This document shows, in pieces, positions 58,345 through 58,617 of a DNA stretch of 64,000 nucleotides. The notes below the pieces were generated by a model. That model was not told the origin of the DNA, did no database searches, and worked only from the letters and a program-made list of their open reading frames with translations. The position numbers and the translations under genes are program-made. The stretch comes from Octopus bimaculoides (taxonomy: Eukaryota): NCBI RefSeq assembly GCF_001194135.2, contig NC_069002.1, positions 3,240,458 to 3,304,457 of the forward strand, in the 5' to 3' direction. How positions within the stretch are numbered: position 1 is the stretch's first letter; each line of letters starts with the position of its first letter.

Positions 58345-58552
58345 CTGGGCAAACCCATAGCTTATTTCATGTGGACAAACCCATAGCTTACATTATGTAG
58401 ACAAACTCTTAGCATCTTTCATGTGGACAAACTCAGAAATTACTTCACGTGGACAAACTCATAAATTATTTCATGTGGACAGACCTGTAATCTAACTCAT
58501 GTAGACAAACCAATAACTTAATCCATGTGGACAAACCTATGCCTTACATTGA
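58345..58552. repeat. 8 x 26-bp tandem array with conserved CATGTGGACAAAC core, 65 bp upstream of the T-box ATG
   Basis: Units start at 58345, 58371, 58397, 58423, 58449, 58475, 58501 and 58527. The core GT(G/A)GACAAAC is conserved and the other half of each unit varies. Confidence 0.9.
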
Positions 58553-58617
58553 ACACCAAAAACCTATCGGAAATCTCAAACACCATTGTTGATATTCTCA
58601 TTAACTGATTGCTAACA

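Follow-up and report, generated by a model that had tools for sequence, protein, structure and literature searches.

Does the 26-bp tandem array that lies just 5′ of the start codon of an octopus T-box gene act on that gene and, if it does, through which part of its repeated unit? The array stands near one end of a 64,000-nucleotide stretch of the Octopus bimaculoides genome (contig NC_069002.1, positions 3,240,458 to 3,304,457; hereafter the window), and it had been interpreted from its letters as a repeat-number-tunable dial on a developmental regulator, operating either as a homotypic cluster of Twist-type E-boxes or as a ladder of upstream open reading frames (uORFs). Were the core of the unit a working site array, the locus would let control by repeat number be tested in a simple setting, on a developmental regulator of a cephalopod; to our knowledge, hardly any work has addressed cis-regulation in cephalopods. 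That arrays of factor sites in promoters can serve as tuning knobs is already established (PMC3899988), and a favourable outcome would add one more case. As matters stand, the outcome for the proposed function is mostly negative. The reading that we prefer, with a probability of about one half, takes the array for an old minisatellite, confined to one lineage and by now partly decayed, in non-coding DNA 5′ of a Tbx15/18/22-class gene, with the E-box cluster and the uORF ladder as its by-products.

The array and the gene downstream

Tandem Repeats Finder (TRF) places a tandem array at 58346-58537, with a period of 26 bp, 7.4 copies, 75% matches and zero indels, and an independent repeat search of the array returned the same 26-bp spacing. 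When read in unit register, the array comprises the eight units upstream of the T-box start codon that had originally been described (Table 1). The core of the first unit is degenerate (ATTCTGGGCAAAC), and a weakly preserved ninth unit appears to follow the eighth, with which it has AAACCTAT in common at an offset of 27 bp. Minisatellites are made of head-to-tail copies of constant period with a unit of about 10-100 bp, and this is what we find here (26 bp, 7.4-8 copies, no indels). The array occupies positions -276 to -69 relative to the A of the start codon of the T-box gene, its end lying 69 bp before the ATG at 58618. The mean pairwise identity of whole units is 71%, and with units so strongly diverged the array is probably no longer unstable.

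Table 1 Features of the array, its surroundings and the T-box gene, and 26-bp arrays with the same core in metagenome contigs
Feature	Position	Strand	Basis, sequence or remark
Dispersed repeats ending in poly-T	57508..58021	.	Context; up to 12 copies in the window plus L001
Minisatellite, 8 units x 26 bp	58342..58549	+	Core CATGTGGACAAAC plus 13-bp variable spacer; TRF, unit register
Core starts	58342 (degenerate), 58368, 58394, 58420, 58446, 58472, 58498, 58524	+	
Decayed ninth unit (putative, weak)	58550..58575	+	TGAACACCAAAAACCTATCGGAAATC; read from unit register
Unique leader or promoter DNA, gap between array and start codon	58576..58617	+	In-frame TGA at 58606; no ATG
Exon 1 (putative coding), eh1-like motif	58618..58804	+	ORF; N-terminal alignment with TBX15/18/22-type proteins; donor A/GTTAAGT, phase 1
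Exon 2, start of T-box domain	59370..59472	+	Sequence; Pfam T-box match
Exon 3, T-box domain (...YRYVYH)	60023..60139	+	Pfam T-box match
Exon 4, T-box domain	63528..63684	+	91% identical to O. sinensis protein 'T-box protein 12-like, partial'
Metagenome array	L003 755-1014; L005 535-664		AATTGTGGACAAACTGTACTGGGCCC
Metagenome array	L011 1-104; L018 about 1314-1499	L018 minus	AAGTGTGGACAGACAGCTTACTGCTG
Metagenome array	L010/L020		AACTGTGGACAAACTTCCCAAATGTA
Metagenome array, 19 units	L022 6486-7010; also L002, L014-L016, L023, L024		ACGTGTGGACAGACTAATGGGCGCGC

The open reading frame that begins with the main ATG (58618-58620) joins in phase to exons 2-4, and exons 1-4 all lie within the window. 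The exon 1 donor at 58804/5 is atypical and weak by consensus, and its position is deduced only from its phase with exon 2. The joined translation of the four exons matches the Pfam T-box domain (PF00907) over residues 72-184 with E = 9.2e-38, and its best database matches are named TBX15, TBX18-like, TBX22-like, TBX1/10 and mls-1. The N-terminus of the product, which carries the motif (L)S(T/S)(K/R)A.AF(C/S)VE.L(L/I), aligns residue for residue with TBX15 of Anabrus and Mytilus, with TBX22-like and with Strigamia proteins; the Mytilus coruscus protein named TBX15 begins MFSENAKAFCIENLL. The N-terminal eh1 motif of Tbx15, Tbx18 and MLS-1 binds Groucho (PMC3154951), and the octopus N-terminus would be a motif of this Groucho-binding type. 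Judged by ranked matches only, the gene appears to be a Tbx15/18/22-like T-box gene with an N-terminal eh1-like motif, the combination of T-box and N-terminal eh1 motif being common to it and the Tbx15/18/22 group (Tbx1 subfamily); its O. sinensis counterpart is a partial model, 'T-box protein 12-like'. Because the N-terminus aligns with its homologues and an in-frame TGA lies 12 nt upstream, the start codon at 58618 is well supported, and the domain match and this alignment uphold the earlier placement of the array directly 5′ of a T-box start codon. By-products of the analysis are thus a supported start codon, an exon 1-4 model and a T-box gene exon 1 for which a peptide search gave no protein match in the searched database and an exact ORF look-up gave no other contig.

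We considered and rejected a 3′ splice site at 58624/5, which has a CTAAC and 121 nt free of AG (58504-58623) ahead of it: the window holds 21 AG-free runs of at least 120 nt, and the L-S encoded just upstream of the AG matches the conserved LS of the homologues. Coding exon 1 contains a 15-nt inverted repeat (58648-58700) that begins 30 nt downstream of the start codon and has 93% complementarity and a 23-nt loop.

Arrays of this kind are frequent in the surrounding DNA. With a period of 20-26 bp and at least 5.5 copies, five are found in the 57.6 kb of non-N sequence of the window, about one per 11 kb. Repeats account for 35-44% of octopus genomes, and in O. minor simple repeats alone reach 14.7% of the genome (PMC6279123). 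That an array of this class should stand near a gene start is in itself unremarkable. In the other minisatellites of period 20-26 bp (1819-1949, 9857-9998, 38915-39035 and 51863-51986), the columns that vary are concentrated in one part of the unit, and the one at 51863-51986 falls within an ORF encoding TTAPNTTT-type, mucin-like repeats. No significant similarity links the T-box array to any of these window minisatellites, including the 26-bp array at 9857-9998.

Across the whole window, the core pattern has nine matches at no more than two mismatches, against 2.6 expected (at least nine in 0 of 100 shuffles). All seven good matches lie inside the array, and elsewhere in the window there are only two chance-level matches with two mismatches each. 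No second array and no copy of a unit or flank was found in the 57.6 kb of non-N window sequence or in the 29.6-kb O. sinensis contig L001, 87 kb in total, a sample that is sensitive to very high-copy families only; the array is unique in the window, as had been stated. Upstream of it, dispersed repeats of about 70-80% identity extend over 57508-57990 and are followed by poly-T at 57998-58021, about 320 bp from the array. They are probably SINE- or LINE-tail-like elements on the minus strand. Because these repeats and the poly-T reach 58021, the unique 5′ flank measures only about 600 bp, one third of which is the array. Rfam returned no family in or beside the array, all weak matches falling in microsatellites, and no inverted repeats surround it within 58200-58700.

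The age of the array can be judged from its own divergence. Contig L001 (VCDQ01004442.1) carries P0060 of O. sinensis, the sole related Octopus protein that the searched database contains; the contig aligns with the window from about 62692 onward, at 84-92% DNA identity, and does not reach the array. The spacers of the array are only 52% identical to one another, a divergence far above the 8-16% that separates O. bimaculoides from O. sinensis in the neighbouring intron, and on this basis we take the array to be old and not being homogenised. A neutral array would therefore predate the split from O. sinensis, and it would be expected in that species as well. The Mytilus coruscus homologue, whose N-terminus is also of the eh1 type, lacks any tandem array within 2 kb of its ATG, and the 6 kb upstream of that ATG contain no match to the core at one mismatch or fewer; the array is not ancient at the mollusc level, and the Mytilus comparison shows only that. 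An exact copy of the core TGTGGACAAAC occurs at 6342-6352 of an ENA contig (L027) as coding sequence (..CVDK..) of an intron-less T-box ORF, and exon 3 of the window has the related GTGGATAAAAG at the same protein position. We take the agreement between this ORF and the array core as coincidence.

E-boxes and upstream ATGs as products of one unit

The history that we propose begins with one 26-bp unit that by chance contained CATGTG and that would have been multiplied head to tail, presumably by replication slippage or unequal exchange. After amplification, the copies would have diverged by point substitution, leaving an array that would now be promoter-proximal or leader DNA; any regulatory role of this DNA is hypothetical. 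The multiplication of a single CATGTG-containing unit would explain why E-boxes and ATGs recur every 26 bp.

The E-box positions on which the original prediction was built are exact: CATGTG begins at 58368, 58420, 58472 and 58524, and CACGTG at 58446. This amounts to five class-B E-boxes within 162 bp, with sites 26 or 52 bp apart, and only 0.2% of 273-bp windows across the whole stretch have at least five such sites. A homotypic bHLH enhancer would contain multiple E-boxes of a single type in a span of a few hundred bp; those found here all come from one amplified unit. The five E-boxes are one ancestral motif copied with the unit, not independent events; motif counts inside a tandem repeat overstate the evidence, because one event is copied many times. 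An E-box under selection in such an enhancer would also be conserved above its surroundings, and in the comparison of the eight units it is not: it is intact in five and lost from three, and four of the five core substitutions fall in its six columns. The E-box is the least conserved part of the core, eroded more than GACAAAC, which is near-invariant.

The assignment of these sites to Twist fares no better. Many bHLH proteins bind CATGTG and CACGTG, both generic E-boxes of class B, and the motif identifies no factor. Drosophila Twist also binds CATGTG. The sites reported for TWIST1 are CATATG when it forms a homodimer and CATCTG when it pairs with E12 (PMC4914114), and CATGTG is not diagnostic as a 'Twist-type' site. 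The equation of 26 bp with about 2.5 helical turns is correct, as arithmetic only. For all its local density of sites, we thus hold a homotypic cluster of Twist-type bHLH sites alternating between helix faces to be very unlikely.

The six upstream ORFs originally listed are likewise exact, namely 58369 (MWTNP, then stop), 58395 (M, then stop), 58421 (24 aa), 58473 (MWTDL, then stop), 58499 (M, then stop) and 58525 (27 aa), and a seventh upstream ATG that was missing from that list stands at 58539 (17 aa). All seven ORFs with an ATG between 58345 and 58617 terminate ahead of the main ATG, and the one that starts at 58525 is in frame with it, separated by the TGA at 58606. If the array lay in the 5′UTR, these ORFs could form a ladder that throttles translation of the T-box mRNA. 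ATG counts, however, need comparison with an AT-rich background. The 273-bp region has seven ATGs against 5.6 expected from the density of the window, and 30% of windows of the same size have seven or more. The initiation context is weak as well: among the nine upstream ATGs at 58280-58539, position -3 is a pyrimidine in eight, and position +4 is T or C and in no case G, whereas the main ATG has A at -3. A period of 26 bp is not divisible by 3, so peptide conservation does not extend past MWTN/D. The upstream ATGs are not marked out from the background of AT-rich DNA, and we regard translational throttling by a uORF ladder as highly improbable. GCN4/ATF4-type uORFs are conserved parts of mapped leaders and their context is defined; the octopus locus resembles them in that several short upstream ORFs end before the main start, and it differs from them in its background ATG density and weak context. 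Two core-promoter motifs, TATAAT at 58324 and TCATTC at 58341, were considered as a marker of the transcription start site (TSS) and set aside, being too close together and too common in DNA of 37% GC.

Uneven decay of the unit and same-core arrays elsewhere

One part of the unit, 11-13 bp long, has decayed far less than the rest, and this unevenness is the sole feature that a neutral model does not easily give. Across the seven full units, the 13-bp core has 5 mismatches to the consensus and the 13-bp spacer 27, and when units are compared pair by pair, their cores have a mean identity of 0.90 and their spacers one of 0.52. The probability of such an asymmetry is about 3e-4 under a uniform null in which the best 13-column half is chosen over all phases, and 0.006-0.009 in simulations in which the units share a coalescent genealogy; it rises to about 0.03-0.05 once the five comparable arrays of the window are allowed for. 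Since the four other arrays show a weaker tendency of the same kind, with P values of 0.05-0.19 for the clustering of their variable columns, part of the signal may be generic to minisatellites of this class. The earlier claim that one half of the unit is conserved while the other varies stands as a pattern, and the selection on a motif that was read from it is allowed by the simulations (P = 0.006-0.009). Constraint, if any, would be centred on GACAAAC or TGTGGACAAAC and not on CANNTG, because the core substitutions fall mostly in the E-box columns; GACAAAC itself has one substitution across seven units. That some factor constrained the 11-bp core, be it in the host or in a mobile-element ancestor, is a serious possibility, though well short of an even chance.

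A pattern scan for two cores TGTRGACARAC placed 26 bp apart, a design that forces both core and spacing, gave no matches in prokaryote genomes (596 Gb) and none in viral contigs; in metagenome contigs it gave 24 stretches from about twelve independent loci. At four of these, the stretch belongs to a true 26-bp array; the four arrays have the core TGTGGACA(A/G)AC in common and unrelated spacers (Table 1). The contigs that carry them are rich in microsatellites and for this reason look eukaryotic. In L003 and L005, the array stands at the end of a 482-bp common stretch of 94% identity and differs in copy number between the two contigs, a pattern such as a mobile element would give. In L022, which has the largest array, the variable columns are mostly CpG sites, which is not so in the octopus array. 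Pfam gave no match on the exon-like stretches beside the L022 and L003 arrays. Chance could give one to three such same-core arrays by a rough estimate in which the number of 26-bp arrays in the collection is not controlled for, and we leave them unexplained and do not count them as support. A bolder reading would make TGTGGACA(A/G)AC the site of a conserved DNA-binding protein, 26-bp arrays of it recurrent in distant eukaryotes and the octopus copy a copy-number-dependent proximal promoter element of the Tbx15/18/22 gene; on the sequences compared here, we give it very little credence.

Readings of the conserved core

If the array acts on the gene, it would most plausibly do so by repeated binding of a factor to (A)TGTGGACAAAC, rather than by bHLH binding at the E-box or by translation control. 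The array would then be a homotypic series of sites for some sequence-specific factor at the near-invariant TGTGGACAAAC, with partial E-box overlap, and a proximal promoter element whose copy number sets its strength. The cores that are 90% identical beside spacers that are 52% identical, an asymmetry that neutral simulations seldom produce, and a position within 300 bp of the start codon speak for this reading, and cis-elements are expected near the start codon of a developmental regulator, which counts against a plain minisatellite at -276 to -69. Tuning through tandemly repeated factor sites is known from other promoters (PMC3899988). On the other side, no known motif could be assigned to the core; comparison with Fox, Sox, Runx, CSL, T-box and Pax sites gave partial matches only, and in the literature the core sequence turned up only in unrelated work, apparently by coincidence. 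The like, if weaker, clustering in the other window minisatellites and the absence of the array from the Mytilus homologue further argue against it, so that we put this forward as a tentative alternative. A doubtful one derives the array from a mobile element, of which it would be a fragment, for example an internal or subterminal block of repeats; its core would have been kept by selection within the element family before insertion and would have no function in the host. Dispersed repeats that come to within about 320 bp of the array would fit such an origin, as would the same-core array that ends the 482-bp stretch in L003 and L005. The 87 kb of Octopus DNA, however, holds no second copy of a unit or flank, which excludes very high-copy families only, and the array has neither terminal inverted repeats around it nor similarity to the other arrays of the window.

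The preferred reading, a decayed minisatellite, draws on the constant 26-bp period without indels, the commonness of the array class, the lack of an Rfam match or a flanking inverted repeat and the absence of the array in Mytilus. Against a plain minisatellite stand the uneven decay (5 core against 27 spacer mismatches) and the recurrence of the same 11-bp core and period, with unrelated spacers, in eukaryote-like metagenome contigs, for which the chance level is not controlled.

Known systems illustrate what such an array could do. The human INS VNTR and the MAOA 30-bp uVNTR are promoter-proximal minisatellites. In yeast, promoter tandem repeats have been described as 'tuning knobs' (Vinces et al. 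2009, reviewed in PMC3899988). The octopus array is like these systems in consisting of head-to-tail units of 10-60 bp within a few hundred bp of a gene start, and a unit can hold a factor site, so that copy number can alter site number. In the promoter VNTRs, copy-number polymorphism and an effect on expression have been shown, whereas the octopus array is known from the sequence of one assembly and its units are strongly diverged (71% mean pairwise identity). A repeat-number dial would depend on both properties of the VNTRs, the polymorphism and the effect on expression. Among homotypic clusters, the octopus array most resembles in layout the Su(Hw) array of the gypsy retrotransposon, which has 12 short conserved cores and AT-rich spacers in about 350 bp. 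The octopus array shares with it a short conserved core every ~26-30 bp and free AT-rich spacers; its own core TGTGGACAAAC is known from sequence alone, with no other copies found in 87 kb.

Two observations concern the remainder of the window. A 253-bp stretch is present twice with 100% identity (60955-61207 and 62278-62530) on the flanks of an N gap at 61378-62277, and is most likely a scaffolding or gap-closing artefact rather than a real duplication. About 29 kb upstream of the T-box gene, an uninterrupted, non-repetitive ORF of 761 aa (26894-29179, plus strand) is probably a large coding exon of an unrelated gene.
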